A DNA stretch of 64,000 bases from Penicillus capitatus (Eukaryota; Plantae; Chlorophyta). Under the pieces are notes generated by a model. It saw only the letters and a list, made by a program, of their open reading frames with translations, did no database searches and was not told the origin of the DNA. The position numbers and the translations under genes are program-made. The stretch lies in NCBI GenBank assembly GCA_965649825.1, contig OZ287701.1, positions 1,105,101-1,169,100 of the forward strand. Direction: 5' to 3'. Positions 7,310 to 63,477 of this stretch are shown here, piece after piece; positions within the stretch are counted from its first letter, which is position 1; every line of letters starts with the position of its first letter.

Positions 7310-7381
7310 TTCCGCTGCCGGGAATTGAACCCGGGTCTTCTGAGTGAAAGTCAGATATCCTAGCCACTGGACTACAGCGGA
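7310..7381 (-). tRNA. trnE-UUC: tRNA-Glu(UUC)
   Basis: Reverse complement TCCGCTG-TA-GTCCAGTGGCTAGGAT-A-TCTGA-CTTTCAC-TCAGA-AGAC-CCGGG-TTCAATT-CCCGG-CAGCGGA-A folds as a cloverleaf with anticodon TTC; a T-rich terminator follows. Confidence 0.95.
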
Positions 7382-7531: not shown

Positions 7532-8313
7532 ATGGGTGTCTTAACTGTCTGTCTTTTTCTGTGCTGGGCAACGTTGTCCGTGGGGGACCGGATTCCGTGT
7601 ACACAGCCGGTCACTTACAATGTGGTTGCTGAGTGCGAATGGACCTCCGCCACGCATCCCACCGACTATCCCGCGAACGCGCATTTCAGCAAGATGTGCG
7701 GCACGGTCCATAACAGCGCCTATCGAATGTGGCAGTTAAACGGATTCGCCACGCCTGGGGTGAAAGAGATCGCCGAGACCGGCAGCTGTGCCATTTTCTC
7801 GAGCGAAGCCTCAAGCTGCGAGAAACAGAAAAATTGCCTTGCGAACAGTCAGTTTGCTTGGGCATGCACCTCTGGGGAGGAAAACAACCCAACCGTTTGC
7901 ACGTTCAGTGGCAGCGTCAAGGTGACCGACACATACCGTCATGTCTCGATGCTCTCTATGCTGGCCCCATCTCCCGACTGGATCATCGGCGTCGATTCGG
8001 CTGACCTCTGTCAAGCAGGTATTCCTCTACCGACCGTCCATCCACCTTATAACCGACTGTCTGGTATGCAGATGCGAAAACGGGTGTCGAGTACTGGAGA
8101 GAGTCGTATCCGGATAACGATGCTGAGGATCTCTATGCTATCGATGCTGGAACAGACGGCGGGACGACGTTTACCTCGGCCGATGCCCCGTTGTTGGACG
8201 AAGAGAAAAAATCCATCCAATTGTTTGACGCTCGGGACTTGAGCAATATCTTCTACAATCCGAAACTGAACGATGTGTTGCCGATCTGCAGCATCGAATT
8301 CATACGCCAGTAA
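7532..8313 (+). CDS. Secreted Spondin_N-domain protein, 2 exons
   Basis: Signal peptide, then HPTDYPANAHFS, FATPGVKEIAETG, SMLAPSPDWIIGVDSADLC | DLYAIDAGTDGGTTFTSAD; intron ~8018-8067. Confidence 0.88.
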
Positions 8314-10227: not shown

Positions 10228-11554
10228 AAAGGGCATAGATCGCAGCAGAGGTGAATAGAGCGGTCGGAAACAATTGCAAGAGCAAAGATCGTTATTTACG
10301 GTGAACAAATCGAACAAATCGAACTCCATTATCACCAACCAATACGCAAGCGAGGAAGCATTGAGTTTATTGGAGATGGAGACAGAGTTACGCGGAGATT
10401 TATTTGACGCCGCTTGTTGCATCTCAATTGACTTTTTGTTTTTAAGTATCATTTTCGATATGCGCCCTCCCGCGCCAAGAATTCAGTTGCTAGTCGCATT
10501 CGAGAAATCGCAGGCCTATTGTTCTTACACATCCATCGATCTTGCCCATCATCCTGAAGCAAAACGATTAAAGAGATGTCTAAATGCAGGATGGTCCCAT
10601 CTCGACACAACATACTTCGCAGAATCTTGATCGCGCACAGGAATGGCTGAAATCGCCGCAACTGGACGACGAGCTCTGTCCGTTAAATGGGCCAAGAATA
10701 GAGATTAAAGTGCTCAGGGATGAACCCGCTGAAAACTTCGTGGCCGAGGAAGCTTCGATCATATGTCTTTGCCATTCCTACAAGCTACGTCTCTCTTTGC
10801 CCTCTAATCAAACCGACGAAGGATGTGAAAAAATTTGGCATGTCCACGCTATATGTGCATAAAGTGCCGTCTCAAACAAAGGATCATTGCTCAAGGACTA
10901 ACGTCGGAACCGTTCGGGAGCGACAGACGAGGATAGAAACATCAAATTCGACAATCCGAGGATAGAACAGACGGCGGATCGTGACAAACCATCGGGTCTC
11001 GTTCCTCTCTCGAGGTGGCGACGTACTTTGCAAATCTCCCCAATAAAAAACAATTCTGGCAGATACCGGCGAAGATTTTTGTTTCGCCTTTTCCCCTTGA
11101 GTCATTGTTGGCGTTGGGAGCTGAAAGCGAAGCGTCTCGTTTCTTTGTTCAGGCTCTGAAACCGTATGCAGCGACACTCAAGTTGTCGGCAAGATGGCGA
11201 TCTGCCGATGCGACTGTCTTGTTCCTAAGGGGTTCATGTCTCAAGGGGGTGCAGGTTGAATCATCCGAGGCGCTTTTCCCTGGTTCTGGCGCTAGGGTGA
11301 TTCACCTGCTTATAGAAGTCACCTCACTGAGCGGGTACTTAAGGGAGAAACCAGACGATTCGAGACCTTGCTCTGAAAACTGTAAACAAGTCTTCCGCTG
11401 TGTGAATCTTTCGTCCGGCCCGATCGCCGACACAAGTCGCTCGTGATTTCCTGTCTCTACCGTTTCGTCTTCGGACACGATCCCAGATTGAGTAAGTGTC
11501 AACGATGCAGTAGTCACGTCGCCTGCCGCAGCCATCGGAACGGTTGAGTCCATG

Positions 11555-11830
11555 TGTAACCACCCTGGCGCGCTGACCATCGGTCGCGACGAGTGTTTGC
11601 ATCCGACCGGCCTTTCTAACAATGGTCGGACGATGGTTGCTGAGAGTAGGCTGAAGTTCCCAGCCGTTAGACTTAAGGTTAATGAAGCCCCGATTATTCT
11701 GAGAATTTAATACGAATAGTCTCGTATCATTAATCTTGAGTTCCTGTTGCTACATCTGAGCGTTCGTTTGCGTCGTCGTCGCGTGCCGTTTTGACTCCGA
11801 GTTTCTGAAAAAGATTACATGATCCCAATA
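11555..11830 (+). repeat. LTR (subfamily related to the 41.4-kb element LTR), TG...TA ends
   Basis: Shares aacca(c/t)cc(t/a)ggcgcgctgaccatcggtcgcgacg and the ...ttacat(c)gat(t)cccaata terminus with the LTRs at 41420 and 46332. Confidence 0.75.
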
Positions 11831-14802: not shown

Positions 14803-16882
14803 ATGCTCCTCAGCGACGATTTGAACGCTCCGCTTATACTCACCGTCGACCCGAGGGGTGAAGATCGCCATTGCAGCTACTGTGTCACGTCGCATGGGGA
14901 GTGCTCACCTGGATTATTGCAATCTCCCTTTGAAACGGCTCGCCCTGTCAACGCCGACCATATCGACGTCTGCGAACGCACACTGTACGCGCAGTCTCTT
15001 CGTCGTTTTTGTGCCATTTGCCATGTAGTCATGCCATTCGAGAGGGTTCAGGAATCCAAGAGCTCATCGACACGTGTCCAGAAGACGTGCTCACGGTATT
15101 GAAAGAACTCGCCGTTGTAAAGCTCGGCACGTTCCAAGCCACCGTACGATCTTGTATGCACCATGCGCATAGGACAGAGCCGTGCCTTCTACAGGACTCC
15201 GAGGTTTTGAACGCCTTTGGAAAGAACTCTATGTTGACGATGGGATGTGAGTCGGTTGATGTTCCCGACTGGAAGGAAAAATGGACCGAACGCATCCGAC
15301 AGAAAGCATCGGCACAGAAGAGGATCGTTTCGGGTATATGATTTCGCACACCTGACCCATGGGACACGCCTCGGTCGGTGTAGTTGGATGGGAGGAACTG
15401 GTCACTCTCGGAGCGTACGCAGTGAACATTAAACATGCGGCGACGCGCGATCGTGGAGCAATTCTACAGCTTCTTTCTCAGAAACAGTCGGCTGGAGCTG
15501 CATCGCGAAAGATTTGGGAATTTCCTGCCGTGCGCGCGGTCATCAATTATCACTGGCAACATTGGGCTGAGAGATTTCTGATGGCCGCTTCTCTGCTATT
15601 CGTTGGCTGGTTCCTCTCCTTCTCCGGCTACTGCATCGTTTACATCGTGATGCTCGATGCTCAATACCAGCGAACATTTTTGATGTTTCCTGTGCAGGAA
15701 GCCGATGTCGATGCCTCCGGTATCGGAGGTGCCATACCCTGGATCCATCTCCTTTCGTATGTGCTCAACCTTCTCTGCTTCATTTTCATGTTCCCTTTCG
15801 CCGTCATGGAATACTGGACGATTGTGGAGCAAGGACGACGGTGGATTCAGCCAAGGAATGTGACGGATGTGTGTGCCATCGTGTTGCAAACCCTGATTTT
15901 TGTCTGTCACTTGCTGAACTGGTCGGTGGGTCGAGAATGGTTTGCCTACGTCCTTGCTTTGCAGTGCGTCTTCCTTCTGGCCAAACTGCAGATCTTTGGA
16001 CGGTTCGATCTCGATTCCGTCCTCGCCGGGGCCGAAGACATGTTGTTCCAGGGCGTTGAATTCCGGCGCTTCTTGCTGCGGTGTCTTTCTCTCCGTTCTG
16101 TACGATGTTCGATATCTGCTATCGTATATCTTAGCTACTGGATTTACTGCAGCCCTCTGCTTGGGTGCTATATACAAGCACGATAAAGTAGGCGACGGCT
16201 GTCTGTCTGTCACGGATGGCTGGTTTATTAAGACGCGTGTGTTTAGGGCTACACTGAACAAAAGCACCATCTCCAGTTTAATTCGTTCAGAAATGCTCTT
16301 GTGACAACATTCGAGATTGTTTTCGGCCAATTCGATGTTTCCTATATCTTCGAAGCCGACTACCCATGGATCAAGTTTATTTTCTTTTTTGGGTTTCAAA
16401 TGCTGATGACCGTAACCATGCTGAATTTGCTGATCGCCGTAATGACACAATCGTACTCCAAAGTCACGCTGCTGTTCGCAAAGGAGCGCATCACAGTGGT
16501 ATCTGCGTGATCTAGTTATCGGAGAATCATCGCTCTCGCTACAATAGCGGGAGAGCAAGTATGATTGATGAGCTAGAGGCTCTAAACATTCCGTCCATCT
16601 TCTGCGGCGAGATGCATCCTTACATCCACTTCTTAGTGGTTGAAAACAAACCGAGGTGCGGTCTCTCTCCTCTGTGCGTCTAGCACTGGGTTTTGTTGCA
16701 GGGTCTCTCAGGAAGCCCCTCGGGCCAGTTGCGTAGCTCCGGATGGGTCCCTTGAGGAACTGAGACAGAAAGTAGATTCGATGACAAGCCAAATCAAGGT
16801 CTTCTGCGCATGCGCACATTGCTGCCTGACGCGTTCTCTCTGCCGCCAGATATTGATCGATCTGCTGAATACGAAGCAGTAG
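14803..16882 (+). CDS. TRP-family cation channel, paralog A (apparently intact, multi-exon)
   Basis: WEFPAVRAVINYHWQHWAERFL pre-S1 motif, six TM segments, pore TTFEIVFGQFD, S6 TMLNLLIAVMTQSYSK, TRP-box-like GRASMIDELE; exons join in frame. Confidence 0.85.
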
Positions 16883-19227: not shown

Positions 19228-21575
19228 CTAGTTGTTGGTTCCATTGGATCTTGTTTCTGTTGGAAGTGCTCGGGTGGCGGACTTCAGCTGATTGAGAACG
19301 TCCTGCAGAAGAGACCATCTGAATCCACCGGCAGAGATCGTTGCTGATCAGAGCTTACATCCAATTTCGTCGAGAGATGTCGGACTTCGCGTCTCAAGTC
19401 CTCCACTTCCAGATGCTGTTCGACTCCGTGGGCCGGACGTTTCATACTTGTGTTGCGAGAAACCCTTCATGCCACAGATGATGTCAAGACCGTCGATTCA
19501 GACAGAAGGCTAGGCTTACGCAGCTGTGTTCTTCTTCTCCTTCTCCACGGTCAGGAAATGAAGATAACGCTTCGGATCTGGCGTGATGAACTTGGTAAAC
19601 GGCAAATCGTACATCTCGTTGATGGCTTGGGCTCTTCCCCTGTAAAGCTGTGCCATTTTGTCTCCAGCCGTCTGGGCAATGAGACATATATTGAGTGACA
19701 CAGAATGCAAGACGGATGGCGGCACACCTCGCTGTAGGCCTGGGACATTGCAGCGATGAGCAGGTTCAGAACCGTAATCGTCATCAGGATTTGGAATCCG
19801 AAGTAAAAAATGAACTTAACCCAGGAGGACTCTGCGTCGAAGATATAGTGAAGCTCAAAGTTTCCAAAGATGATCTGAAATGTCGTCATCAGTAGTTTCT
19901 TCACATTCCTAAATTCGTCGTGGCATTCGTGATATTGCTGCAGAGCACAGAGCCGATGATTCTGTTTGTCAAATAGAAGATTGAAGGGCCGACCTCGTCG
20001 TGTCGGTAAAGAGATCCGATACAAAGGGAGGCGGCCACACCAGCAATTAATATATATACAATCCACAATCGCACGGCATAGATAACCTCGATAGCAGAGT
20101 CCAAAAAAGTTGATCCTTCCCCCAGTAGCCTGAGAAAATGGGCACACACCATCCTTCGATGGTCTCAGCGACAAGTCTCAGGGTTACCTGAAGTAGCGTT
20201 GTACTTGGACGAGAAGAAGTATGGTCTGGGTGGCCAGCAGCCATCCAAACCATTCCTCGGTCAGGCCTTGATTTGTCATGTGAAGAATAAAGATGACAGC
20301 TTGGAGGACCTGCAGACAGATGTCCGCCAGATTCTGCAGCTCAAACCACCCATATTTCTGCGTCACCATGGACCAGAGCTCTTGGACAAGGAATGGACAC
20401 GAGCAGACAAAGCAAATAATGTTGGTGATGTGTGTCAGCAGAGTAATGGTGCTATCGCCAGAGAAGGCCCCGGAGTCATGCTTAATATCACAGAGGAACT
20501 CTTCTTTCAGTATGACAGAATTCTCGCAGCTGAATGCAGACTCGTCGGAGACGTCAACAGGAGAATCTGCACTGGCATCACTGGCATCTGTGATGTCCTT
20601 GTCAGAATACGAAGGACAATGCGTCCGAGAATCCTACAGCATAGAGTCCGTCCGTCCATGTCGACCGAATGGAGGCAGGAGAACAAACGATATAGAGGCA
20701 GATGTAGAGACCGAAGGATACGGTCCAGATCAGGAAGATGCAGAAAACGGCAAGGAGGAAGCGTCGTGCCCAGTGACTCCAGTGATAGTCGACCACAGCA
20801 CGAACAGCCGGAAACTCCCAGACCGAATACGTGGCAGCACCGGAGCCGGATTTCTGGAGAAGAAGGGAGAGAAGATTCCCTTCCTTTGGATTTGCAATAT
20901 CTCGCATGCAAACGACATACGCTGTCAGGGTCACCATCTCTTCCCAGCCCACTACACACCACAGGCACAGCTGACCCCAGGGTCATCCGTCTCGAGGGGC
21001 TCCCCACCATCGATGTGTTGTATGTTCCTCGTCACACGTCCCGCGATGAACTCCGTCCAGTTCGCCTCCCAGTAGGGATCATCTTCCAGATCCGAACATC
21101 GCGTCAGGAAATTGCATCGATTAAAGGCACGCAGGATGTCAGAGTCCTATCGAGATGCATCGTTAGGTGGTATCGAGGAATGACGATTTTGCCGGACCTT
21201 TGCCTTGAATGTGCCTTGTTTTGCGACGAGCATGTTTTTCAGAACAGTCAGCACATCATCTGGACATGCATCGATAAGATCCTGAAGCGAGCATTCGGTC
21301 CTCAACATCAGCCTAAGACAGCCACAGTTGCACACAGCACGACCGCTGCGGTACGTCTACACTGTTGCTGGATCGACATCGACACAATCCTCAGGAAACA
21401 CCGATTCGCTAAACGGAGACGCAGCGCCCGCCAAAAACGTGTCGATTTCGGATGGCTGTGTCAGAATGGAAGTAGTGTGCCTCTCAATGATGATATCATC
21501 TCTCTCTTCGTCCACCGGCGCCAGTTGCTGGTAGAGATGCGAGACAGGCGAGTTCTTTCCTCTCCAGTTTTTCAT
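19228..21575 (-). CDS. TRP-family cation channel, paralog B (apparently intact)
   Basis: WEFPAVRAVVDYHWSHWARRFLL, pore TTFQIIFGNFE, S6 VLNLLIAAMSQAYSE, RGRAQAINEM; exons join in frame across ~50-nt introns. Confidence 0.85.
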
Positions 21576-21900
21576 GTCCTCTCAAATTGGCGTGCGAACA
21601 GCGGCGGTCGGCTCAAGAAAGCTGCAACGACGACGTGGGAAAAAATAACACGCGGACTTTGGACGTTTTGAGCAGACGGCTTATGGATGTCTAGGGCTCA
21701 GCGCTAAAACGACTGACTGCCTAAACAAAGGATGCTGCCGCTGATGACGATGACGATGACGTAATCCGATTTGCAGGAAAGAGGTAGGCGGTCGCCAGGG
21801 GCATGTATCCCTGTCGTCCAGATCGGAAGCTACAAAGCTGATTTAAATGATTGTATGCAATTGAAATTAATAGTGTGCAGGATGAAATCAAAACAATAAT

Positions 21901-23053
21901 TTTTTTAGGTTGGCGGTACTTACATCCCCTTTTAAAGTGAAACATCAGAGGAGAGGCCGGACACATTGTTCATTGTTCATAATGACTCAAACTAGTTCAT
22001 GTGGATTAACACCACCTTCTTCCTTGTGAGTTCCATTCTCTTGCGATGTTGTCGAGGAATGCCGCCAGCGAGCTCGGGGCATTCCAAAGAGAGTGAGATT
22101 GCCCTTCACTAGTTAACAGTTCTTGCTGGTAAGTCCTTCGGATGCCATCAAATCGGGTGCAGGAGTGGAGCAGGTGATCTCTGTCTTCGTCTCCTTGCCC
22201 ACATTCGCAGGTTGCGTCTACCTTCATGAGGTTGAAGCGCTTAAGATACGCCTTTGACGGGAAGTGATTCGCCAGAAACTGGTTGACCCGAGAGGCGTTA
22301 ATACGCTGCAGTCTTCTTGATGGGAAGTGGCCTTTGCCTGTTGTTGGCTGTAGATCCAGCACCGCTCTACCCTTGTCCGCAGTCGCCTGTTGTGCCTGTG
22401 CTAAGCTGTTTAGCGTGAAGCTGATGTGTCTTTTGCACCAGCCAAGGTCAGTGTAAGTGGCATGATCCAGTCTGGTCCGATCTTGAGACATGAGGAGCTC
22501 TGCTGTTCTTTTTGCTGCTTGATAGGGGCTTCTTCCTGGGGCCCAGTTCTGCGTAAACCAGTTGACTTTGTTTCCTGCTCGTCTCCAGCTGATCCACCAT
22601 TTTTGGATGTGATGCATATTCTCTGTCACGTTGAATGGATTCGTGCGCTCTTTCTGATACATCACTCTTCTAGTTATGATGCCGAGGGACTGCGGCCGAT
22701 TCTCCGTTTGCCTTAGATCTGACAGGGAGAGTAAACCTTCCCTGATAGCCGAGAGCACCACTTCCTTTACTGTTTGATGCGGCGCCACGAGGACCCCTCT
22801 CCCTGAACGCTCTTCCGGTCCTGTGAGCTTCCAAATCACAAGTGACATTGTGCCAGAGGTGCAGGGCTGCTCCGTTTCTGCGATAGCCAAAATCCACGTT
22901 GGTCGTTGATCCTGATCTTCCTCATCAGCCTCTAAGGCCGCCAGCTGTTCCGGAGGGAAGCTGCATAACCATCTGTCTGGGAGGCGGATGTTCAGTCCAT
23001 TTGGGAGACTTCGATGCCATTGTCGTGTGGTTATCTGCCTTCTATGGGACGCC
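21901..23053 (-). mobile_element. 5'-truncated LINE insertion with short poly(A) and 14-bp TSD
   Basis: TSD ATCAAAACAATAAT at 21887-21900 and 23054-23067; T6 at 21901; open frame through an RNase H-like region and CECGQGDEDRDHLLHSC; the empty site is present in the paralogous block at 39285-39298. Confidence 0.92.
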
Positions 23054-23829
23054 ATCAAAACAATAATAGAAGAACAAGGATATGTAAGAAACGCAGACAG
23101 TTTTCGTGCAAGCTTGGGTGAAGGATGATGTGTTAGATGGAAGGTCAGAGATCGTCGGCTAGATCCAAATGCTTTCATCCGAGCCTCTTGAGTGAGTAGG
23201 GCTGTGCACCAGAGCAGATGGTTGCTGGTTTCAGGATGCTTTGAGTAGAGACGGTATTTAGTATCTGAAAGGTCATGGCCACGCGCCACAAAGTAGAATC
23301 TTATTGGGAAATGTGCGAATAGAGACACGAAGATCAGCCGGGCGTCTAATCTATTCATGTTGGTCTGTGGAACAGGTTTGGCATGTGTGTGGTGTATCTA
23401 GCCTGGTTCTTTGATCCCAGTGGCCTTTGAGCCTGTAGTCCAAAAGCGAGAGAGATGGTCTTATATGTAGCTTCTGACGGTAGCCTTGAAATGCTTTTGT
23501 CCATAACAGGAGTAGGTGACATTATGGATGATTCGCAGCAGGGTCCGACATCACATGGAACGCCCGATTGGCGGAGTCTTCGAATTTTTGTCCGCGGTAG
23601 GTCTGTCGGAGAACAGTGCGTTGCCCTGTCGGTCATGAGTTTAAGTCTCTGATGTTTTCTTTCAGGATCCGTGGTCCGAGGACAAGAAGCTCGTATGTTA
23701 CATGTTCTTTGATGGGCCACGGTTAGGCTAGTGTTCTCTGATGAATTGCGATGGTGATCATCTAAAAAAATGAACACATAAACGAACGCGCACAATCAAA
23801 GAATTGTAACCGCGATCTACACGTTTTTG

Positions 23830-26240: not shown

Positions 26241-27235
26241 TTGGCAAATGTCTGTTCAGCTCCCCCATTTTATAATCGAACATGACGTCATTTTCTCGTC
26301 ATGCTTCATCCTTCGATCTGGCTTCTCCGCTTCTGTCCTTCAGTATCATGACAGTACGACGGTCCAATGTCAGGTGTCATGGAACGGATGTACAGTCGAA
26401 TTTGAAGTTAACGCGTCGACAAGTTACGCGCAGCTGCGTGACGCTGCGTGCGATTTTTTTCGTCTTAAGCGCGGAGACGTCGCACTCTTGACGGCGCAAG
26501 GGAGATATGGTGTGCGACTGCGGGATCCAATTTCTGTCAACGCGATGGAACTGATTACTCGAGACTGCGTCGAAGACTCGGGACTCGACGCGCCGACAGT
26601 ACCTCTTTATCCATGGGACCGATAAACGTACAGAAGAGTCGTCAATCACTTGGAGTCCTGCACAAATGCGGGTAATGAGCGTCTGTGATTGTTTCTGTCG
26701 TGGATCGACTATACCAACCCTCTAGGAGAGTCTCTTCTCGAGGCCGTGCGCTGCGTGAAAAGATTACCACCTGAACAAGTCAAAACGGGATATTACGCTG
26801 ATAAGGACAAGGCATTCTTCCGAACTCAGACTGATGAACTGCTGAGATAGGGTACCATCAAGTGTGAGTTGAAGAAATTGGTTCCACAAGAGAGCGCTCT
26901 TGAGCCCCTAGCTCAACCGAAGGCCTTGGAGAAGAAACCTACCTACAGAGACGGTCCTTGAAATCGTTGTTCGATTCGGAAGAGCCAGAAAAACGTATAT
27001 TGATGAAAAACTCCTAGCACAAGAAAATGTGACTCGTCTTTTAGTCCAGAAACTCCCTGTCGACTTTGTGTATCATCTGTCGACTGTGGCCATCAATCAG
27101 CTCACTCTCAGTTCATCTACGACAGAGTCTGTGATGTGATGGATTACATTCGATTAAGATCGGGAGAGGTCCGACCGTCGAGGAAACTTGGTGACTACAT
27201 GGATCTCGGATCGATGCAAACGATGTCGATTGCAG

Positions 27236-30200
27236 TGTGAACTCCTCATGGTACGGAACCATGATGTCACATTGGTGACGAGGGATCAGAAAAGATGACA
27301 GTCCGATGCGACAGGCAAAACTGATGGTATGCTGCGATCGAAGCGATAAATACCGACTCCATGATGAATTAGGTGTAAAAACGTTTTGGTCTTTTGAAGA
27401 ATTCACGACGCGGAACCAATGGCCGATGCCAAACGTGCTCGTCCGAATGACATGGTTTCGGAGCGAGGTTCTCAAACGAGAACCTGCCTGGTTTACTCGA
27501 AGTATACTCGAGACATTCACGAGTGGTTGTTTGAATCGCTGGAAATCACTACGGCGGTAGGACATGAACGAGATCGAACCCCAGTCGGCAGCCTCGAATC
27601 TTGTTTTGCCTCAGCTAAAAGCCGTCCGACGCCTGGACGAAAAGGCATGTCACGAAGAGCTTGGAGGTGAAACGGCGTCCGAAGAAACCGCAGTAGACGA
27701 TCTTCGTTGGCAAGTATTAAATAAACGTTTGGCAGCGCTGTTGCCGAAAGATGACTTCGTGGCGCCCGAGGACCAGCTCCGCAGCATGAAACGTGATATA
27801 GCGAAGGAAAACTTGCTTGTCTACGTGGACCGTTTTGTTCGGGTAGCCCAGTCCTTTGTCTCCCAGCAAAAAGTATCGATGGAGAAGGCCGTCCGGATCC
27901 TTTATCATCAATGCCTGAAGAGATACGTCGGGCATTGATCCTGTGGCGCGCCCGGCCACCTCCGGCCGCTGGCGACCAGAGGCGACGGGCCGCTTACTCT
28001 GGGTGATGCGTTTGATGTCACATTCACAGCGGAAGTCGTGTTGCTCGCGTTCCTGGCCTCCTCCTGCGGTCGAGGACGTCGTATGCGTTGCTACGCATAC
28101 GGCGTCCTTGGCCGTATCTTCTTTCCATGCATGCGCGTTACACCTGAATCTGCGCGTCATGCGACTTCTCGGTTCTCAGCGACGGGGCAGTCGTTCCGGG
28201 CACTGTCTTCGGCGTTCGATAGCGGGTCTCCGGAGATGCCTTCTTGCCAAGTCTCAACTCAAGCGACGTCCTCTGTGGGAAGTTGCCCGTGTTACAGTGA
28301 AGTGGCGCCAACTTGGTTGAGGCGTTCTGCGACGGCGCTTTCGGCGGCGACGGCGTTTTCTGGCGGCGGCGACTCAGGAGACAAGGCTCTGGTGGTCAGG
28401 GCAGTGCTCACGGCTTCGGGGCCTCGAAATCGGACAGTTCTGCAGCTTGTTCTTGTCGATTGTGGATTGGTGTGATGCGCGAAGTATTTTTTCAGGTGCG
28501 CGCATTGGGTTTTTATATGTGAGTAGGCCTTCCGGCCAGATTCGGTGGATGTTCAGCGCAGAGGAGTCATGCGCGGCCTCATTAGAGTGAGGCATGTGTT
28601 TTTGCGGCGCAGAGCGCCTCTACTATGTGAGTGTCCCATCAGATTCAATGAGACTCGAGTGAGATCAGTGGGGTTGGCTATGACAGAGTGAGGGACATGG
28701 TTCTGTAAGGATATGGTAAAGAGAATAGGATGATTACTCAGCATGCAGAACGCAGTGTCATGTCACATCACTCACTGTATATAAGGTACTTCGCCGATTC
28801 TCTGTCGTTTCACGCGTCGCGTCGTCGCCACAGCAAAGCACTGAGTCCTCGGCCCGAAGTGCGTTACAGATCCACACCGGAAAAGCCGGACTGAGTTTGA
28901 TACAAATAGAGACGCTGGTGCGAAACAAGCTCGAGGTGCTGGCCATTACGGACGCAGGAGAATACTCGTATCGACAACTGATCGAATACCTCGATGAAGC
29001 TACTTGTCGACAAAAGGCTAATGGCAAACCGGAGACCGCAGTTTGGAGCTGCCACTTGCGGGTGGAGAAACACCGCAGCTATCAAGCGGACAACACCGAC
29101 GGTTGGACATCAATAACCCGAACCATGTGATGATCGCATGGAAACGTTTGATGCGGGTGCCCCGCTTTCGACGAGAGGTGCAGAAATATCTCGCTTCGAA
29201 TTCCTTTGACGCGAGGCCGGCCACCCAACTCAGGGCTTTACAAACCGAAACCGAAGATATTGACGATCCTTTGGAGCCTGAACTGGCCGAAGAAGACGGG
29301 GATGTTCTTTCCAAACCAGGGCTGTATACCATGTACAAGGGTTACCCTCTGGTCTGCTCTCGAATTTCCCCTGTGGAAAAGGCTAGCATGAATGTGCCGA
29401 CCTGCATCGAAGGGACCAATATCAGTGGTTTGGTGGATACTGGCGCCACTGCATGTTTCATTCAAGAGGCTACTGTGAAAGCATTGGGAATCCAGCAGAG
29501 AGTAACACAGTGTGGAAACCTATACGTTTCGCTGGGAAATGGAAGTGCCTTTCCAATTCTGGGACGCATAAACATCGAAGCCCATATAGATGACCATCCA
29601 TATGAGATGGAAGCGTTTGTGATTGGAGGCAAAGGCCCGCCGCTCATCCTGGGATTCCCCTTCTTCGCTACGAATCAACTTCTCATTGATTGCCAAGAAA
29701 AGAGAATCTGGCGCAGAAATGGCGAGGAAATAACATGCACGCAGTCACAGCTAAAGGTCCTTAACCAAACTGATGTGACCCATCTCCTCGAAGAAATGCA
29801 AAGACCTCCAAACTGAGCTCGATGAGCTAAAGGGGCAAAAAACATCCAAGGAGCATCACTGAATCCAGCCCAGTGGTGTTGAGCTTTGAGTTGCTGGAGA
29901 CTCCTCTATACCTCCCATTTCTGAGAAACTGCTATCTGGTACTCCCTTTCAACAGATCGTGGGTGCTGGGTCCAGGGGAATGCCGAAAGCTCATCCTTCC
30001 CGTTAAGTTTATCAAGGGAAGTTTAGGGTCCATCACGGACGCGCTTAATTGCCCAGGAGTCAGGTTTTCTCCACAAAGCAATGGATGTAGGGTCTGGGGA
30101 ATGCTAGAGAATCGAGGACGAATGCCACAACATTTGATGCCTAGGATGCCACTGTGCATCATCCAAACCAATGTGACGCATGTACTGGTTCCAGACAGAG

Positions 30201-33043
30201 GGCAAATTCCGTTGACAGAAAGAGGAATTCCGTTGCCGCTGAGAAGCATTGTTGCGTATGGAGAAGATTTGCAGAATATATTGCGAGAATTCCACGACTT
30301 AACCAGTGGCAATCTTGGGAAATGTGTCGATCATGTGGTGACAGATATCCCATTTCAGCATCGCCTGACAAGACAACAATCATCGCCCTCCATATCACCC
30401 AGCGAAGAGTTGTTAGTTCTAGAAGAAATCAACAAGTTAGTAGAGTTGGGGGTGGTCAGGGAGACGTCCCGTGAGCCATATTTGATCCCGGCGTTCTGTA
30501 TTCCGAAAAAAACTGGAGATGTGCGATTGGTGCTCGATTTTCGAAAGCTGAACTCGTGCGTAGAAGCGCAGCCCTTCCTGGCAGTGAATAGAGAGCATAC
30601 GATCGCTGGGTGCGCCCGTATGTGGTCGGGTCAGCAATCGATTTGCAAAACGCGTATTTCCAAGTAGAGCTGGCCCCTAAGCTGCATCATTGCTTTGGAG
30701 TGTGTTTGCGACGGAAATTCTACGTCTACGAACGACTCCCCTTCGGATACGTCAATTCACCTAGTGAATTCCTAAGAGCATTGAGACCTGCGATTGCAGA
30801 AATGGATGAAGCAGTGCAGAGCCAGGTGGTGGTTTACATGGATGATATTCTTTTGCTCTCGCAATCAGTCAGTGCCAGAACATCTCCGAGATCTACGTCA
30901 AGTACTCCAGATTCTGGAAAAACGGGGATGGCGAGTGCGACCGGATAATTGCTCCTTCATGCAAGAGGTATTTGACTTCTTGGGACACGTTGTGACCCCT
31001 ACAGGTTGGCGTGCAAGTGCCTCAGCAACAGAACGCCTTCAAAAGCTACAGCCTCCCAGAACGCAAACAGAGTGGAGAGCGATAAAGGGATGGTTCCAGC
31101 AACTTGTTCGATTCGTGGTGAACGGTAGAGTGGTGCAAGGAGCGCTACGGAAGGCGAAGAATCGGGAAGGGTGGAGGATTGGCAGACATTTCTGAGTGGA
31201 TTGGAACAACACACAGTGGCATGTACACACGCAAAAGAAACAGCGGACTTTGGCATCGCAGTGGACTCGTCGGGAAGTGGCTGGGGTGCAGTGCTATTGC
31301 AACAAAAGCAAATTATTTGCTGTGCTTCTGGTTTGTGACCACAAGCATTGAAGCATCAGATTTCGAATCACTTGGAAATGGAGGTAGTGGTCAAAGCTCT
31401 TCGCAAGTTTCATCTATGGATCTTTGGAGGGAGAGTGACGGTGTTCAGTGACAACTCTTCGGTGGCCAGCCTCGCAAATGCAGACAAACGAAGTCCTTTC
31501 GTCCGACGACGGCTGGACCAAATCCAGGAGTGTTGCCCACGGTTGCGTTTCTTGCCGGGGCACTCCAATGTGCTGCCAGATCTTCTCTCGAGGCAGAGCG
31601 AGCTATTTCCGGATTCGTCAAGTGGTATAACGGCCGCCACAATGAGAGAGAGGCCATCGGATTTGGCCGGAGCTCACGCGGGGCATTTCGGAGTCGAAAA
31701 GACCTGGGAGATTGCCAAAGAACTAGGATTATCAGTTACACGGGAGGAAGTCAAAGCCTACTGTCGTCAGTGTCGTGTGTGTCAACAATTTCAACCAAAG
31801 ATCAGGACCGTGCCGTTGGGACGGCTGCCCGAAGCCCTCCGTGCTGGAGAACTCATTTCTATTGACTTCGTTGGCCCCCTACGGGCTGCCCGTACGGGGG
31901 TACGTTATGTCTTTACAATGGTCGATCATTTGACGAGGCTGGGAGCGGCTATGGCGTTCAAGCGATCCACGACGGCTTCGGCTCAGAAAGGGGTGGAATG
32001 GTGGTTTCGAGAGAATGGAGCCCCTAAGCGAATTCTGTCAGATCGAGCAAGCTATTTTAGCTCGCCGACCTTCAGCGCGTGGACAGAGGAATGGGGCGCT
32101 CAGAGTATACCGACTGCCCCGTATGCCCATCATTCGAACGAACTTAACGAACGATGGAATCAGACGTTGGTCAATCGTTTGCGCAGAATGTTGCTCGATC
32201 ACCCTGGAAAGACGTGGATCGACGTGCTGCCATTGGCAGTCGACTGTACAAACCAGGCACCGCACAGCATTACCGGATTCGCTCCTTGGTACCTTTGGTC
32301 GGGCATCACTATCGGAGGTCGGCAGGCTACACTCGAAGAGGTGACGAGAGATAGACAGATTTCCGCTTGGATGACCAGAGAAGCTCGAGACAAAGAACTC
32401 GGGGTTTCTGGACGAATAGAACCGTTTCAGCCATCCATCGGAGAGGAAGTATGGGTCTTCGATGCCGTGTGGATGGAAAGGCTCGACGACAAACTGAGTC
32501 CCTTCTGGGTTGGGCCCTTTGTGATCGTCGAACAGTGTTCTCCGCATGTTTGCCGATTGAGACGTATTGGGTCAAGTCAGAAGATCATTTGCCATGTGGA
32601 CAATTTGAGGCCTTATGTATGACACTCTGTCGGGAGAGGGTCATCCAACAGTGAAGCGCTCAGACTGTCTTCCGTTGGTACATCACTGGGTAGAGATCCC
32701 GGGCCCTTGAGGGCTGGCTAATGTGATACGCCTATCGAATCTTCAAGCTGTTGACCACTGCAACGAGCGAAGGAGCTCAGAGTGGAAGCGGAGATCCCTT
32801 CGGACTTTTTGATCGCGCAGAGAAGCGTGTGAACTCCTCATGGTACGGAACCATGATGTCACATTGGTGACGAGGGATCAGAAAGATGACAGTCCGATGC
32901 GACAGGCAAAACTGATGGGATGCTGCGATCGAAGCGATAAATACCGACTCCATGATGAATTAGGTGTAAAAACGTTTTGGTCTTTTGAAGAATTCACGAC
33001 GCGGAACCAATTGCCGATGCCAAACGCGCTCGACCGAATGACA
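27236..33043 (+). mobile_element. Ty3/Gypsy LTR retrotransposon G1 (full structure, frameshifted)
   Basis: LTRs 27236-27452 and 32828-33043 (TG...CA, ~5 differences by eye); PBS TGGTTTCGGAGCGAGG at 27453; PPT before 32828; LVDTGAT protease, YMDD RT, RNase H, HHCC + DDE integrase (31348-32622); flanks GCAG/GCAA. Confidence 0.93.
27942..28868 (+). repeat. 927-bp TG...CA insertion (probable solo LTR) in G1 gag
   Basis: Perfect 5-bp TSD GATCC (27937-27941, 28869-28873); the gag frame MPEEIRRALI|HTGKAG is restored on removal; TATA-like ctgtatataagg near the 3' end. Confidence 0.88.
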
Positions 33044-36612: not shown

Positions 36613-38991
36613 CTAGTTGTTGGTTGCATTGGATCTCGTTTCTGTTGGAAGTGCTCGGGTGGTGGACTTCAGCTGATTGAGAACGTCCTGCAGAAGTGAC
36701 CATCTGAATCTACCAGCAGAGATCGTTGCTGAGCAGAGCTTACATCCAATTTCGACGAGAGATTTCGGACTTCGCGTCTCAAGTCCTCCACTTCCAGATG
36801 CTGTTCGACTCCGTGGGCTGGATGTTTCATACTTGTGTTGCGAGAAACCCTTCGTGCCACAGATGATGTCAAGACTGTCGATTCAGATCAAAGGCTTACG
36901 CAGCTGTGTTCTTCTTCTCCTTCTCCACGGTCAGGAAATGAAGATAACGCTTCGGATCTGGCGTGATGAACTTGGTAAACGGCAAATCGTACATCTCGTT
37001 GATGGCTTGGGCTCTTCCCCTGTAGAGCTGCGCCATTTTGTCTCCCGCCGTCTGGGCAACAAGACGCAGTGGGTGACACAGAATGCAAGACGCATGGCGG
37101 CGCACCTCGCTGTAGGCCTGGGACATTGCAGCGATGAGCAGATTCAGAACCGTAATCGTCATCAGGATTTGGAATCCGAAGAAAAAAATGAACTTAACCC
37201 ACGAGGACTTTGCGTGGAAGATATAGTGAAGCTCGAAGTTTCCAAAGATGATCTGAAATGTCGTCGTCAGTAGTTTCTTCACGTTCCTAAACTCTTCGTG
37301 ACACTCGTGATATTGCTGCAGAGCACAGAGCCGATGACTCTATTTGCCAGATAGAAGATCGAAGGGCAGACCTCGTCGTGTCGGTAAAGAGATCCGATAC
37401 AAAGGGAGGCGGCCACACCAGCAATTAAGATATACACAATCCACATTCGCACGGCATAGATAACCTCGATAGCAGAGTCCAAAAATGTTGATCCTTCCCC
37501 CAGTAACCTGAGGAAATGGCAACACACCATCCTTCGATTGTCTCGGCGACAAGTCTCAGGCGGTTACCTGAAGTATCGTTGTACTTGGATAAGAAGTAGT
37601 ATGGTCTGGGTGGCCAGCAGCCATCCAAACCATTCCTCAGTCAGGCCTTGATTTGTCATGTGAAGAATAAAGATGACAGCTTGGAGGACCTGCAGACAGA
37701 TGTCTGCCAGATTCTGCAGCTGAAACCAATCAAATTTTTCCGCCGCCATGGACCAGAGCTCTTGAATAAGGAATGGGCACGAGCAGACAAAGCAAATAAT
37801 GTTGGTGATGTGTGTCAGCAGAGTAATGGTGCGATCGCCAGAGAAGGCCCCGGAGTCATGCTCAACATCACAGAGGAACTCTTCTTTTAGTTCACCGCAT
37901 TCTAGCGCTCCGTGACCATGCTGTCTCTTGTTACTAAAGGAATCAGAATACGCGTAGCTGACTGCAGGCTCGTCGTAGACGTCAACAGTAGAATTCGCAC
38001 TGGCATCTGTGCTGTTGTTGGAATACGAAGGACAGTGCGTCCGAGAATCCTACAGCACAGAGTCCGTCCGTCCATGTCGACCGAATGGAGGCAGGAGAAC
38101 AAACAATATAGAGGCAGATGTAGAGACCGAAGGATACGGTCCAGATCAGGAAGATGCAGAAAACGGCAAGGAGGAAGCGTCGTGCCCAGTGACTCCAGTG
38201 ATAGTCGACCACAGCACGAACAGCCGGAAACTCCCAGACCGAATACGTGGCAGCACCGGAGCCGGATTTCTGGAGAAGAAGGGAGAGAAGATTCCCTTCC
38301 TTTGGATTTGCAATATCTCGCATGCAAACGACATACGCTGTCAGGGTCACCATCTCTTCCCAGCCCACTACACACCACAGGCACAGCTGACCCCAGGGTC
38401 ATCCGTCTCGAGGGGCTCCCCACCATCGATGTGTTGTATGTTCCTCGTCACACGTCCCGCGATGAACTCCGTCCAGTTCGCCTCCCAGTAGGGATCATCT
38501 TCCAGATCCGAACATCGCGTCAGGAAATTGCATCGATTAAAGGCACGCAGGATGTCAGAGTCCTATCGAGATGCATCGTTAGGTGGTATCGAGGAATGAC
38601 GATTTTGCCGGACCTTTGCCTTGAATGTGCCTTGTTTTGCGACGAGCATGTTTTTCAGAACAGTCAGCACATCATCTGGACATGCATCGATAAGATCCTG
38701 AAGCGAGCATTCGGTCCTCAACATCAGCCTAAGACAGCCACAGTTGCACACAGCACGACCGCTGCGTTACGTCTACACTGTTGCTGGATCGACATCGACA
38801 CAAGCCTCAGCAAACACCGATTCGCTAAACGGACACGAGGCGCCCGCCAAAAACGTGTCGATTTCGGATGGCTGTGTCAGAATGGAATCACAGTGCCTAT
38901 CATTGATGATATCATCTCTCTCTTCGTCCACCGGCGCCAGTTGCTGGTAGAGATGCGAGACAGGCGAGTTCTTTCCTCTCCAGTTTTTCAT
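36613..38991 (-). CDS. TRP-family cation channel, paralog C (B-type)
   Basis: Near-identical to B except in the N-terminal patch and the S1-S2 loop; the indels seen are in frame. Confidence 0.83.
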
Positions 38992-58159: not shown

Positions 58160-58718
58160 TGGGCAATTCGAGGTCTCCTATATCCTCGAAGCCGACTCTT
58201 CATGGTTCAAGTTTGTTTTCTTTTTTGGGTTTCAAATGCTGGTAACCGTAACCATGCTGAATTTGCTGATCGCCGTAATGACACAATCGTACTCCAAAGT
58301 CAAGCTGCTGTTCGCAAAGGAGCGCATCACAGTGGTATCTGCGTGATCTAGTTATCGGAGAATCATCGCTCTCGCTACAATAGCGGGAGAGCAAGTATGA
58401 TCGATGAGCTAGAGGCTCTAAACATTCCGTCCATCTTCTGCGGCGAGATGCATCCTTACATCCACTTCTTAGTGGTTGAAAACAAACCGAGGTGCGGTCT
58501 CTCTCCTCTGTGCGTCTAGCACTGGGTTTTGTTGCAGGGTCTCTCAGGAAGCCCCTCGGGCCAGTTGCGTAGCTCCGGATGGGTCCCTTGAGGAACTGAG
58601 ACAGAAAGTAGATTCGATGACAAGCCAAATCAAGGTCTTCTGCGCATGCGCACATTGCTGCCTGACGCGTTCTCTCTGCCGCCAGATATTGATCGATCTG
58701 CTGAATACGAAGCAGTAG
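58160..58718 (+). pseudogene. TRP channel paralog D, 3' fragment (pore-S6-C-terminus) of A-type
   Basis: GQFEVSYILEADSSWFKFVFFFGFQMLVTVTMLNLLIAV, then near-identical to A; upstream exons are absent. Confidence 0.8.
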
Positions 58719-61063: not shown

Positions 61064-63477
61064 CTAGTTGTTGGTTCCATTGGATCTTGTTTCTGTTGGA
61101 AGGGCTCGGGTGGCGGACTTCAGCTGATTGAGAACGTCCTGCAGAAGAGACCATCTGAATCCACCGGCAGAGATCGTTGCTGATCAGAGCTTACATCCAA
61201 TTTCGTCGAGAGATGTCGGACTTCGCGTCTCAAGTCCTCCACTTCCAGATGCTGTTCGACTCCGTGGGCTGGATGTTTCATACTTGTGCTGCGAGAAACC
61301 CTTCATGCCACAGATGATGTCAAGACTGTCGATTCAGACAGAAGGCTAGGCTTACGCAGCTGTGTTCTTCTTCTCCTTCTCCACGGTCAGGAAATGAAGA
61401 TAACGCTTCGGATCTGGCGTGATGAACTTGGTAAACGGCAAACCGTACATCTCGTTGATGGCTTGGGCTCTTCCCCTGTAAAGCTGCGCCATTTTGTCTC
61501 CCGCCGTCTGGGCGATGAGACATATATTGAGTGACACAGAATGCAAGACACATGGCGGCACACCTCGCTGTAGGCCTGGGACATTGCAGCGATGAGCAGG
61601 TTCAGAACCGTAATCGTCATCAGGATTTGGAATCCGAAGAAAAAAATAAACTTAACCCACGAGGACTTTGCATGGAAGATATAGTGAAGCTCGAAGTTTC
61701 CAAAGATGATCTGAAATGTCGTCGTCAGTAGTTTCTTCACGTTCCTAAACTCTTCGTGACACTCGTGATATTGCTGCAGAGCACAGAGCCGATGATTCTG
61801 TTTGCCAGATAGAATATTGAAGGGCAGACCTCGTCGTGTCGGTAAAGAGATCCGATACAAAGGGAGGCGGCCACACCAGCAATTAAGATATACACAATCC
61901 ACATTCGCACGGCATAGATAACCTCGATAGCAGAGTCCAAAAAAGTTGATCCTTCCCCCAGTAGCCTGAGAAAATGGGCACACACCATCCTTCGATTGTC
62001 TCGGCGACAAGTCTTAGGCGTTACCTGAAGTAGCGTTGTACTTGGATGAGAAGAAGTATGGTCTGGGTGGCCAGCAGCCATCCAAACCATTCCTCGGTCA
62101 GGCCTTGATTTGTCATGTGAAGAATAAAGATGACAGCTTGGAGGACCTGCAGACAGATGTCTGCCAGATTCTGCAGCTCAAACCACCAAAATTTCTGCGT
62201 CGCCATGGACCAGAGCTCTTGAATAAGGAATGGACACGAGCAGACAAAGCAAATGATGTTGGTGATGTGTGTCAGCAGAGTAATGGTGCTATCGCCAGAG
62301 AAGGCTCCGGAGTCATGCTCAATATCACAGAGGAACTCTTCTTTTAGTTCACCGCACGTTTGCGCCCCGTGACCATGCTGTCTCTTGTTTGCGAAGAGTA
62401 GTTGTCTTTCTTTACTAAAGGAATCAGAATACGCGTAGCCGACTACAGGCTGGTCGTCGACGGCAACAGTAGAATTCGCACTGGCATCTGTGCTGTTGTT
62501 GGAATACGAAGGACAATGCGTCCGAGAATCCTACAGCACAGAGTCCGTCCATGTCGACCGAACGAAGGCAGGAGAACAAACAATATAGAGGCAGATGTAG
62601 AGACCGAAGGATACGGTCCAGATCAGGAAGATGCAGAAAACGGCAAGGAGGAAGCGTCGTGCCCAGTGACTCCAGTGATAGTCGACCACAGCACGAACAG
62701 CCGGAAACTCCCAGACCGAACTCGTGGCAGCACCGGAGCCGGATTTCTGGAGAAGAAGGGAGAGCAGATTCCCTTCCTTGGGATTTGCAATATCTCGCAT
62801 GCAAACGACATACGCTGTCAGTGTCACCATCTCTTCCCAGCCCACTACACACCACAGACACAGCTGACCCCAGGGTCATCCGTCTCGATGGGCTCCCCAC
62901 CATCGATGTGTTGTATGTTCCTCGTCACGCGTCCCGCGATGAACTCCGTCCAGTTCGCCTCCCAGTAGGGATCATCTGCCAGATCCGAACATCGCGTCAG
63001 GAAATTGCATCGATTAAAGGCACGCAGGATGTCAGAGTCCTATCGAGATGCATCGTCTCGTGGTATCGAGGAATGACGATTTTGACTGACCTTTGCCTTG
63101 AATGTGCCTTGTTTTGCGACGAGCATGTTTTTCAGAACAGTCAGCACATCATCTGGACATGCATCGATAAGATCCTGAAGCGAGCATTCGGTCCTCAACA
63201 TCAGCCTAAGACAGCCACAGTTGCACACAGCACGACCGCTGCGGTACGTCTACACTGTTGCTGGATCGACATCGACACAATCCTCAGGAAACACCGATTC
63301 GCTAAACGGCGACGCGGCGCTCGGCAAAAATGTGTCGATTTCGGATGGCTGAGTCAGAATGGATGTAGTGCGCCCATAAGACTTCTTGTAGTCGATTTTT
63401 TCTTCCTCTTCGTCTACCCGCGCCAGTTGCTGGTGGAGATGCGAGACAGGCGAGTTCTTTCCTCTCCAGTTTTGCAT
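61064..63477 (-). CDS. TRP-family cation channel, paralog E (B-type)
   Basis: Near-identical to B/C, with in-frame insertions in the N-terminal patch and S1-S2 loop. Confidence 0.83.

Follow-up and report, generated by a model that had tools for sequence, protein, structure and literature searches.

Why do three tandem copies of one channel gene, near-identical in their cores, differ mainly in a single outer loop, including two conserved predicted glycosylation sites? As read from its sequence, the locus is the expanded S1-S2 loop of a TRPV-like channel, predicted to conduct cations, that has been tandemly triplicated in a bryopsidalean alga. The window (the whole stretch of DNA that we analysed, 64,000 nt) contains the three B-type genes B, C and E along with two A-type features:

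15036..16656, plus strand: gene A, an A-type paralog with a canonical short S1-S2 loop
19228..21575, minus strand: gene B, a TRPV-like channel of 10 exons and 618 aa, intact
36613..38991, minus strand: gene C, 10 exons, 630 aa, intact
58161..58492, plus strand: D, a truncated A-type 3' fragment, co-duplicated with the E unit
61064..63477, minus strand: gene E, 10 exons, 641 aa, intact, the last copy of the array

All introns have canonical GT-AG splice sites. Those of gene B are 48-58 nt long, and the gene aligns end to end with the homologs P0001-P0005. The relatives are green algae, and this, together with the uniform GT-AG introns, led us to reject a dinoflagellate origin with non-canonical splice sites. 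Some ulvophytes read TAG as an amino acid, and exons 4 and 5 of E are in frame across one TAG. We rejected such a non-standard code here because B and C are out of frame at that site and because TAA and TGA occur inside other introns.

By profile, fold comparison and structural prediction, B, C and E are TRP channels with a TRPV-like core and without ankyrin repeats, in agreement with the TRP identity given in the first-pass annotation. A profile of the 26-member family matched solved TRPV3/5/6, TRPV2 and TRPA1 at 1e-18 to 3e-23 over profile positions 130-450 (about 1e-23 to solved TRPVs), and Pfam recognised Ion_trans (4.5e-08) and, weakly, PKD_channel over S5-S6. Both matches appeared only once the exons were joined, as single exons gave no Pfam match. 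Across all 26 members Pfam found nothing but these two domains, and no ankyrin repeats. The N-terminal ankyrin repeat domain of a strictly defined TRPV is therefore missing; the N-terminal region of about 150 residues has no Pfam match and forms a small alpha/beta domain in the AlphaFold2 model. This model, built on the 26-sequence alignment (pLDDT 76.7, pTM 0.70), has six transmembrane helices (204-248, 305-340, 343-364, 371-395, 401-434 and 476-511), the last two, S5 and S6, separated by a re-entrant pore helix (450-461). The best 50 Foldseek matches in the PDB, all of them TRP channels, were 49 TRPV structures and one TRPA1 at probability 1.00, with 386-514 aligned columns and TM-scores of 0.39-0.44, the best being TRPV6/5/3/1.

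The variable segment is, by homology to these channels, the S1-S2 loop; lying between S1 and S2, it is predicted to face the outside or the lumen. The extracellular surface proposed earlier is thus borne out as an extracellular or lumenal one, and the structure prediction suggested as a check places the loop (249-304) between S1 and S2 as a coil with pLDDT below 50. The remaining low-confidence segments, 1-63 and 557-577, coincide with the remaining variable segments. The loop is only about 12 aa long in 20 of the 26 family members; in the B-type clade it is enlarged by an inserted stretch of 50-80 residues with predicted disorder. The features in and around the loop are as follows:

20634..20688, minus strand: intron 4 of B, 55 nt, directly 5' of the loop, phase 0 after LYI
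20188..20633, minus strand: exon 5 of B, encoding the S1-S2 loop, S2, S3 and part of S4
20604..20633, minus strand: anchor DSRTHCPSYS of B, holding Cys1
20511..20603, minus strand: variable loop segment of B, DKDITDASDASADSPVDVSDESAFSCENSVI, 31 codons, without a sequon
38049-38020, minus strand: anchor DSRTHCPSYS in C
37891..38019, minus strand: variable loop segment of C, 43 codons, with sequons NNS, NST and NST and Cys2 within ECGE
62530-62501, minus strand: anchor DSRTHCPSYS in E
62348..62500, minus strand: variable loop segment of E, 51 codons, with sequons NNS, NST and NST and an extra KERQLLFA

Splicing of intron 4 joins LYI to DS, giving the LYIDS of P0002 and P0003. The intron has a 4-nt deletion in E, and an intron at the same position is also present in paralog A (51 nt, 15647-15697). 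LKEEFLCD follows the variable segment in all three B-type genes. Minus-strand translation reproduced exactly the three loop peptides reported earlier, and most of what had been said of them stands. The indels are in frame, each loop has three Cys, sequons are present in C and E (two positions, NNST and NST) and absent from B, and the loop of paralog A, whose codons start at 15698, is very short (about 12 residues). Exon 5 measures 446 nt in B, 482 nt in C and 506 nt in E, so that all differences are multiples of three, whereas introns of the same genes carry indels of 1, 2, 4 and 5 nt. In-frame indels indicate that the segment is coding and nothing more. The variable segment of B has a deficit of 16 codons relative to C and contains a 9-nt perfect tandem duplication. 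B has also lost the ancestral second Cys and gained a replacement through a Tyr-to-Cys change. Since the count of three is kept by replacement, the B loop is probably still partly constrained.

The ortholog of these genes in a related species (O) is single copy, which indicates that the tandem triplication is specific to this bryopsidalean lineage. Three Cys, two sequons and a basic NK(R/Q)(Q/R)H motif (NKQRH in O) are common to C, E and O. The sequons of the ortholog are NDT and NST, the second with the codons AAT TCT ACT, identical in O, C and E. The S1-S2 sequons are therefore conserved across species in C, E and O, while B has neither, nor the NKRQH motif, and is the outlier among the copies. 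That three Cys and two sequons also occur in the ortholog shows constraint, not diversification. The KERQLLFA segment of E resembles LLSLLVS of the ortholog, and C has probably lost the corresponding segment. Few codons were polarisable, as ancestral states in the loop cannot be read reliably from the four-way MAFFT alignment. At the alignable sites B matches O at three and C/E match O at two; changes thus fall on both the B and the C/E lineages, which weakens the case for B as the sole derived copy.

A distant B-type homolog, P0001/L006, consists of 2.8-kb contigs with a single uninterrupted ORF that look like transcripts and encode a loop of 54 residues. A scan of JGI metagenomes yielded nothing beyond the distant relatives already known, at 36-46% identity. 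The related genome has further paralogs, such as the A-type P0007 about 320 kb away. A supposed third-genome homolog, P0126, was rejected, as it is copy C on the same contig. In L005, a second copy of this genome region, the loop is unchanged; the differences from the window amount to four single bases and one 2-nt indel, all outside it.

No other part of the gene evolves as fast as the loop, whether the paralogs are compared with one another or with the ortholog, against which the loop is saturated and effectively unalignable (dN about 1). The loops of B and C differ by 21 mismatches in 97 nt, compared with three in each flanking 100 nt, a rise of about sevenfold. The C and E loops differ by about 6.5% and one 24-nt indel, which is near the C-E background, so most of the hypervariability lies between B and C/E. 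A second segment behaves similarly:

21366..21575, minus strand: exon 1 of B, codons 1-70, a second hypervariable segment with low pLDDT, cytosolic by homology

These codons show 5-14% nucleotide divergence, a 9-nt in-frame indel and a dN/dS of about 1, a variability similar to that of the loop. As a cytosolic N-terminus behaves like the loop, rapid change is not specific to the outer surface. The hypervariable loop of the first-pass annotation is therefore upheld by the sevenfold mismatch rise found here, but the variation is mostly that of B against C/E and is shared with exon 1. Sequence outside the loop is under purifying selection, with a dN/dS of about 0.2 between paralogs and of 0.09-0.14 relative to the ortholog.

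The flanks of the loop have a mosaic ancestry, which is most evident in one tract:

20690..21350 in B and 38106-38766 in C, minus strand: 661-nt tract in which B is identical to C, covering exons 2-4 and introns 1-3

We infer a recent gene-conversion event here, whose tract stops about 85 nt short of the variable loop. Upstream, B is 99% identical to C over about 1.8 kb; from the 3' edge of the loop, B is 97.9% identical to E over 4.2 kb. The introns follow the same pattern: divergence in introns 1-4 is 1% for B-C and 4.9% for B-E, and in introns 5-9 it is 10.2% and 3.9%, respectively. The earlier statement that neighbouring exons and introns are much more alike than the loop is thus firmly borne out on the 5' side alone (B-C 0-1%); on the 3' side, introns 5-9 differ by 3.9-10.2%. 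Along the gene the closest pair changes from B-C to C-E in the loop and then to B-E. A runs test on the site patterns gave 91 runs, compared with 144 +/- 6.9 expected, a value reached in 0 of 20,000 shuffles (P<5e-5). Both the mosaic phylogenetic signal and an identical tract spanning introns and exons are hallmarks of concerted evolution.

We therefore favour, with a probability of roughly 0.55, the reading that the contrast between loop and flanks comes mostly from weak constraint on the loop combined with flanks homogenised by gene conversion. Gene conversion and unequal crossing-over among the tandem copies would homogenise both sides of the loop in mosaic fashion, and the homogenised tracts would end at or near the loop, where indel heterology may block conversion. 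With tracts blocked at the loop, B would retain an older, divergent loop form, one now devoid of both sequons, shorter by 16 codons and with the replacement Cys in place of the ancestral second one. Apart from the Cys, sequons and basic motif common to C, E and the ortholog, the loop changes freely through point substitutions and through indels from slippage or deletion; positive selection may contribute to the pattern. Several observations fit this reading less well. The identity of B to its neighbours outruns the gene on both sides (4.2 kb 3' and about 1.8 kb upstream), a reach that would suit a recent segmental duplication better than a short conversion tract; were the duplication recent, the B loop would have changed much faster than neutral. 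An old, neutral B loop should show about three synonymous differences, and one was seen (Poisson P about 0.16). Five of the 12 codons changed in B relative to C/E are sequon-critical (P=0.063), which hints at directed loss of glycans in B, and the three Cys were retained through replacement.

The strongest rival is diversifying or positive selection on an exposed surface, in which amino-acid and length changes in the loop are favoured, for instance through contact with a cell-surface partner, a ligand, or a pathogen or toxin, and in which selection also prevents gene conversion from merging the loop forms. The loop has 16 nonsynonymous changes to one synonymous, counted over 25 safely aligned codons. 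This nominal dN/dS above 1, which exceeds the neutral ratio of about 3.5:1, is not significant (binomial P=0.08). Tree-wide, loop dN is 0.27 per site, which is higher than the divergence of introns 5-9 (0.116, P=0.003) and than that of synonymous sites elsewhere in the gene (0.105, P=0.001). However, both yardsticks are lowered by gene conversion. Exon 1 is less homogenised, and loop dN does not significantly exceed its synonymous divergence of 0.148 (P=0.14). Older divergence thus persists outside the loop as well, the exon-1 dS of E against B and C (0.13-0.18) being comparable to that of the loop. The comparison of loop with neutral divergence that had been put forward as a refuting check gives a split answer, exceeding two yardsticks but not the third, and the diversifying selection proposed earlier has a nominal ratio above 1 behind it, not a significant one. 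Other evidence is similarly divided. The mismatch jump falls exactly at the loop, the loop dN of about 1 against the ortholog contrasts with a tightly constrained core, and the loss of two conserved sequons in B took at least two changes each. On the other hand, the cytosolic N-terminus is much alike, the C-E loop difference is no greater than background, and disordered insertions, as this loop is predicted to be, often evolve at a near-neutral rate. All of this comes from three copies and a single outgroup, too few to judge whether particular sites changed repeatedly. A literature search found no paper on positive selection on TRP S1-S2 loops. Diversifying selection on the loop is possible, though on balance improbable to us, and it is not needed to explain the data. 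A more specific form, in which the array keeps distinct loop forms (predicted glycan-bearing in C and E, glycan-free and shortened in B) and selection shields the loop from conversion, strikes us as unlikely.

A burst of change in the B lineage could also have arisen without selection, through mutagenic repair at a recombination junction or through overwriting from a divergent B-type paralog elsewhere in the genome. The B gene does switch at the loop from C-like on its 5' side to E-like on its 3' side, four indels and at least 12 substitutions are packed into about 100 nt, and the family has further paralogs in the related genome. The substitutions are nevertheless spread one per codon without multi-nucleotide clusters, the outgroup places changes on both lineages (3 vs 2 sites), and no donor turned up in the part of the genome that the search covered. 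We regard such a burst as quite unlikely. Even less credit goes to B as a redundant duplicate whose loop decays under relaxed selection while conversion from C/E alone maintains the remainder. B differs from the other copies in that neither sequon, nor the NKRQH motif, nor the ancestral second Cys survives in it, and its flanks were recently homogenised, but its 10-exon frame is intact with canonical splice sites, every B indel is in frame and its Cys count is held at three, which makes decay a very doubtful explanation. Finally, a cryptic intron or alternatively spliced piece that removes the variable segment from the mature mRNA can practically be dismissed, since the frame-keeping GT..AG pairs of 40-70 nt found in each loop are not at conserved positions across the copies, loop indels are all multiples of three, unlike those of true introns, the 31-53 loop codons are free of stops in four genes, Cys and sequons are conserved between species, and the transcript-like P0001/L006 contigs retain the loop. 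From its coding pattern, the variable segment is predicted to be translated.

Under the favoured reading of weak constraint and converted flanks, the divergence of this loop is a well-resolved example of ordinary evolution. To our knowledge, hardly any gene-level work exists on the TRP channels of green seaweeds, and the array offers a natural experiment in which one gene in a related species corresponds to three here. If the loop differences alter trafficking or gating, they would reveal a role of the first outer loop in TRPV-like channels. If they are without effect, the locus would be a textbook case of gene conversion making a weakly constrained segment seem hypervariable, and a caution that loop-flank contrast in tandem paralogs is weak ground for reading selection. 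Should the array instead keep distinct forms, the loop might tune trafficking or gating, or take part in surface recognition or pathogen contact, in a giant single-celled siphonous alga.

The algal genes share with TRPV5/6, TRPV3 and TRPV1 the six-helix core, the pre-S1 linker and the pore helix, and with TRPV channels a TRP-helix-like RAxxIxE segment after S6. They differ from TRPV in lacking ankyrin repeats, in an identity of only 11-15% and in an expanded S1-S2 loop, 59-79 residues long, for which disorder is predicted; unlike vertebrate TRPV, their host is a green alga. An enlarged outer or lumenal S1-S2 segment is also shared with polycystins and TRPML, and the weak PKD_channel match over S5-S6 points the same way. 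However, the S1-S2 segment of polycystins and mucolipins is a folded domain of about 200 residues, whereas the algal insert is a short, low-complexity stretch with predicted disorder. In both structure and profile comparisons, the algal channels match TRPV best, not PKD2 or TRPML.

[quoted passage not shown] At the sequence level there is a likeness to this in the sequons that C, E and the ortholog have in that loop. The paralogs TRPC3 and TRPC6 carry different numbers of N-glycans on their extracellular loops, and this number sets their basal activity (PMC4092855). The zero sequons of B and the two positions of C and E would be a comparable paralog difference, seen on the algal side in predicted sites. 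In the MHC and some receptor families, divergent islands are demonstrably held by selection, while for the algal loop selection is possible. With the concerted evolution of tandem duplicates, the algal array shares a mosaic signal and an identical tract that spans introns and ends at an indel-rich segment.

Gene models for the three B-type TRPV-like channel genes (B, C and E) were obtained by building B by hand, using frame shifts together with GT-AG pairs as guides, and carrying it to C and E via a three-way alignment. The window is eukaryotic in character (about 52% G+C, Ty3/gypsy elements and short introns), and each of the three genes comprises 10 exons and nine introns:

21575-19228, minus strand: gene B, intact reading frame, 618 aa
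38991-36613, minus strand: gene C, intact reading frame, 630 aa
63477-61064, minus strand: gene E, intact reading frame, 641 aa

Homologs from elsewhere (P0001-P0005) align end to end with these models. Intron 4 (55 nt in B and C, 51 nt in E) immediately precedes the variable S1-S2 loop, and its splice junction, between LYI and DS, agrees with the LYIDS of homologs P0002 and P0003. In B, C, E and O, the single-copy ortholog of a related species, introns are notably uniform in length (48-60 nt) and all GT-AG, with a weak donor consensus (GTAGAC, GTCCGG, GTGGGG, GTTTGT and others).

The loop sequences lie between two conserved anchors, of which LKEEFLCD directly follows the variable segment on its 3' side in all three genes. 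By translation, the other anchor and the loops are:

20633-20604 (B), 38049-38020 (C) and 62530-62501 (E), minus strand: anchor DSRTHCPSYS
20603-20511, minus strand: B variable loop segment, 31 codons
38019-37891, minus strand: C variable loop segment, 43 codons
62500-62348, minus strand: E variable loop segment, 51 codons

The three loop peptides of the first-pass annotation match the minus-strand translation exactly, and each loop has the three Cys it described. The sequons it placed in C and E are NNS, NST and NST in both, while B has none. Its in-frame indels were likewise recovered, as exon 5 measures 446 nt in B, 482 nt in C and 506 nt in E, differences that are all multiples of three. 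In the A-type paralog A (plus strand), a 51-nt intron occupies the position equivalent to intron 4 and precedes the very short loop reported for that gene, of about 12 residues.

The encoded proteins match Ion_trans and, weakly, PKD_channel in Pfam. A profile of the 26-member family matched solved TRPV3/5/6, TRPV2 and TRPA1 structures (1e-18 to 3e-23) from the pre-S1 to the post-S6 helix. An AlphaFold2 model from the 26-member alignment (pLDDT 76.7, pTM 0.70) returned only TRP channels among its best 50 Foldseek matches, 49 of them TRPV (probability 1.0). An ankyrin repeat domain is absent. On these grounds the B-type protein belongs to the TRP channels and shares a TRPV-like core, without being a strict-sense TRPV. 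By TRP homology, the S1-S2 loop is predicted to face the outside or an organelle lumen, with which the conserved Cys and sequons are consistent. In the model the loop (residues 249-304) is coil with pLDDT <50; the remaining low-confidence stretches, 1-63 and 557-577, coincide with the remaining variable parts of the protein. The S1-S2 loop is about 12 residues long in 20 of the 26 family members; the B-type clade owes its long loop to an insertion.

Divergence among B, C and E was scanned in 100-nt windows. Mismatches per 100 nt fell into three zones: 0-6 between the end of exon 1 and exon 4, 16-21 plus indels between B and C/E in the first loop window, and 0-13 3' of the loop. Between B and C, 21 mismatches fell in 97 nt of loop and three in each adjacent 100 nt. 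C and E differed in the loop by about 6.5% and one 24-nt indel, close to their background, and the hypervariability is therefore mostly that of B versus C/E. Nei-Gojobori counts gave a dN/dS of about 0.2 (dS 0.06-0.09) outside the loop and N-terminus. The 25 safely aligned loop codons had nonsynonymous to synonymous changes of 11:1 (B-C), 16:1 (B-E) and 5:0 (C-E), or 16:1 on the tree. A second hypervariable segment, predicted to be disordered and cytosolic, lies in exon 1:

21366-21575 (B), 38782-38991 (C) and 63268-63477 (E), minus strand: codons 1-70

Here dN/dS was 0.7-2.9 (about 1) and dS up to 0.18, with a 9-nt in-frame indel in E.

The flanks of the loop have a mosaic history. Neighbouring introns had been described as much more similar than the loop, which holds strongly for B-C introns 1-4 (1% divergence) but less so for B-C introns 5-9 (10.2%); the B-E values were 4.9% and 3.9%, so that B's nearer partner in the introns switches from C to E across the loop. 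Variable sites 5' of the loop nearly all set E apart, those within it set B apart, and those 3' of it form alternating runs setting B, C or E apart. Site patterns were clustered at high significance, forming 91 runs versus 144 +/- 7 expected, and none of 20,000 shuffles was as extreme. B and C are identical over 661 nt including three introns, a tract that stops some 85 nt short of the variable loop, and B and E share 97.9% identity over 4.2 kb from its 3' edge. Part of the flank similarity thus stems from homogenisation, whose tracts end at the indel-rich loop. Regions that escaped homogenisation, such as exon 1 and E's 5' flank, have diverged to a degree similar to B's loop.

The closest named relatives of the channel are in Caulerpa lentillifera and Bryopsis, and the PP2A B'' protein of the window shares 62% and 59% identity with Caulerpa proteins, 54% with Bryopsis and 53% with Ostreobium. 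The source is thus placed among the bryopsidalean (siphonous) green algae, with Caulerpa the nearest named taxon. The window falls within the metagenome-assembled ENA contig ERZ25074695 ctg340446_32x_l (776,749 bp), which is 99.95% identical to window positions 64000-52021, with four single-base differences and one 2-nt indel over 12 kb, and in which E proves to be the final copy of the array. ENA ERZ26696514 ctg303815 (about 459-496 kb) comes from a related species and is syntenic with the window; nucleotide identity is 79-89%, and the genes stand in the window's order (PP2A B'', Spondin_N, aminotransferase, A-type channel, B-type channel, DHDPS). Since it has one A-type and one B-type gene (O) and lacks the inter-copy transposons, the triplication and the transposon insertions are specific to the P. 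capitatus lineage. The features of both regions are:

2032-3975: PP2A regulatory subunit B'', single 647-aa ORF
7310-7381, minus strand: tRNA-Glu(TTC)
7532-8242: Spondin_N-domain protein
21900-23054: insertion upstream of B, missing from the otherwise 99% identical upstream region of C
27235-33043: second, degraded LTR element, 218-nt direct repeats (97.7% identical) around broken protease and integrase ORFs
41413-46671: Ty3/gypsy LTR retrotransposon between C and E, LTRs of 347-349 nt, 98.9% identical
58161-58492 (to about 58800), plus strand: truncated copy of the A-type gene 3' end, adjoining E
9393-11798 of related-species locus L004: ortholog O, 10 exons, 642 aa

The A-type fragment beside E shows that a unit containing both A and B was the template for the E unit. 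The Ty3/gypsy element, with an uninterrupted 1473-aa gag-protease-RT-RNaseH-integrase ORF (41802-46223), is probably a recent insertion. The 450-aa ORF of the insertion upstream of B (22006-23358, minus strand) had no Pfam match; its C-terminal Cys/His motif is reminiscent of non-LTR retroelement tails.

Against O, the core has a dS of 0.6-0.9 and a dN/dS of 0.09-0.14, 31% of intron positions differ, and dN/dS is about 0.4 in the N-terminus and 0.3 in the C-terminal tail. Loop dN is about 1, saturated and hardly alignable. The O loop, ESRTYCPSLEGNDTSPDVDNSTSASGNHGLNLLSLLVSNKQRHQSGDDEGSCGITLPDEQPCDD, shares with C and E three Cys, two sequons and an NK(Q/R)(R/Q)H motif, and the codons of the second sequon (AAT TCT ACT) are the same in all three. 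The extra KERQLLFA of E resembles LLSLLVS of O, which makes a deletion in C probable. B lost both sequons, via N-to-K with an inserted codon and N-to-D with T-to-P, and 16 codons, among them the basic motif and the ancestral second Cys. It carries a perfect 9-nt tandem duplication and has a new Cys (TAC to TGC) 11 residues before Cys3.

We consider it somewhat better than even (probability about 0.55) that the loop is a weakly constrained, disordered insertion in the outer loop of B-type channels. Concerted evolution among the copies would homogenise the flanks and magnify their contrast with the loop, and B would retain a divergent form that conversion could not overwrite. The ratio of nonsynonymous to synonymous changes is not the same in the loop as elsewhere in the gene (P=2e-4), which shows only weaker constraint.

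Diversifying selection, as first proposed, is a live but less probable rival, at perhaps one chance in four. It is favoured by the high loop ratio, by high B-C and B-E identity that continues far past either end of the gene, a hint of recent duplication, and by the concentration of B's changes on glycosylation sites (sequon-critical codons were five of the 12 hit, P=0.063). Against a neutral expectation of about 3.5:1, however, the 16:1 ratio has P=0.08. Across the tree, loop dN is 0.27 per site, which does exceed the divergence of synonymous sites in the remaining gene (0.105, P=0.001) and of introns 5-9 (0.116, P=0.003). The refuting condition set by the first-pass annotation, a loop no more divergent than introns or synonymous sites, is therefore not borne out, but both yardsticks are compromised because gene conversion homogenised the flanks. 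The excess was not significant over exon-1 dS (0.148, P=0.14) or exon-1 dN (0.169, P=0.08). A non-selective burst of change, or an unseen donor, is doubtful; at positions alignable with O, changes fall on the B lineage and the C/E lineage alike. Decay of B, whose reading frame is intact, is improbable. Splicing out of the variable segment is very unlikely: loop length differences are all multiples of three and intron indels (1, 2, 4 and 5 nt) are not, and the segment therefore behaves as coding sequence.

Two family members in Bryopsis sp. KO-2023, GMH44220.1 and GMH44224.1, have locus tags four apart (BSKO_12154 and BSKO_12158), and their genes lie on the same 4.6-Mb contig, so it may be common for such channels to be clustered in tandem in siphonous green algae. 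The locus is a fresh example of an already known mode of evolution.
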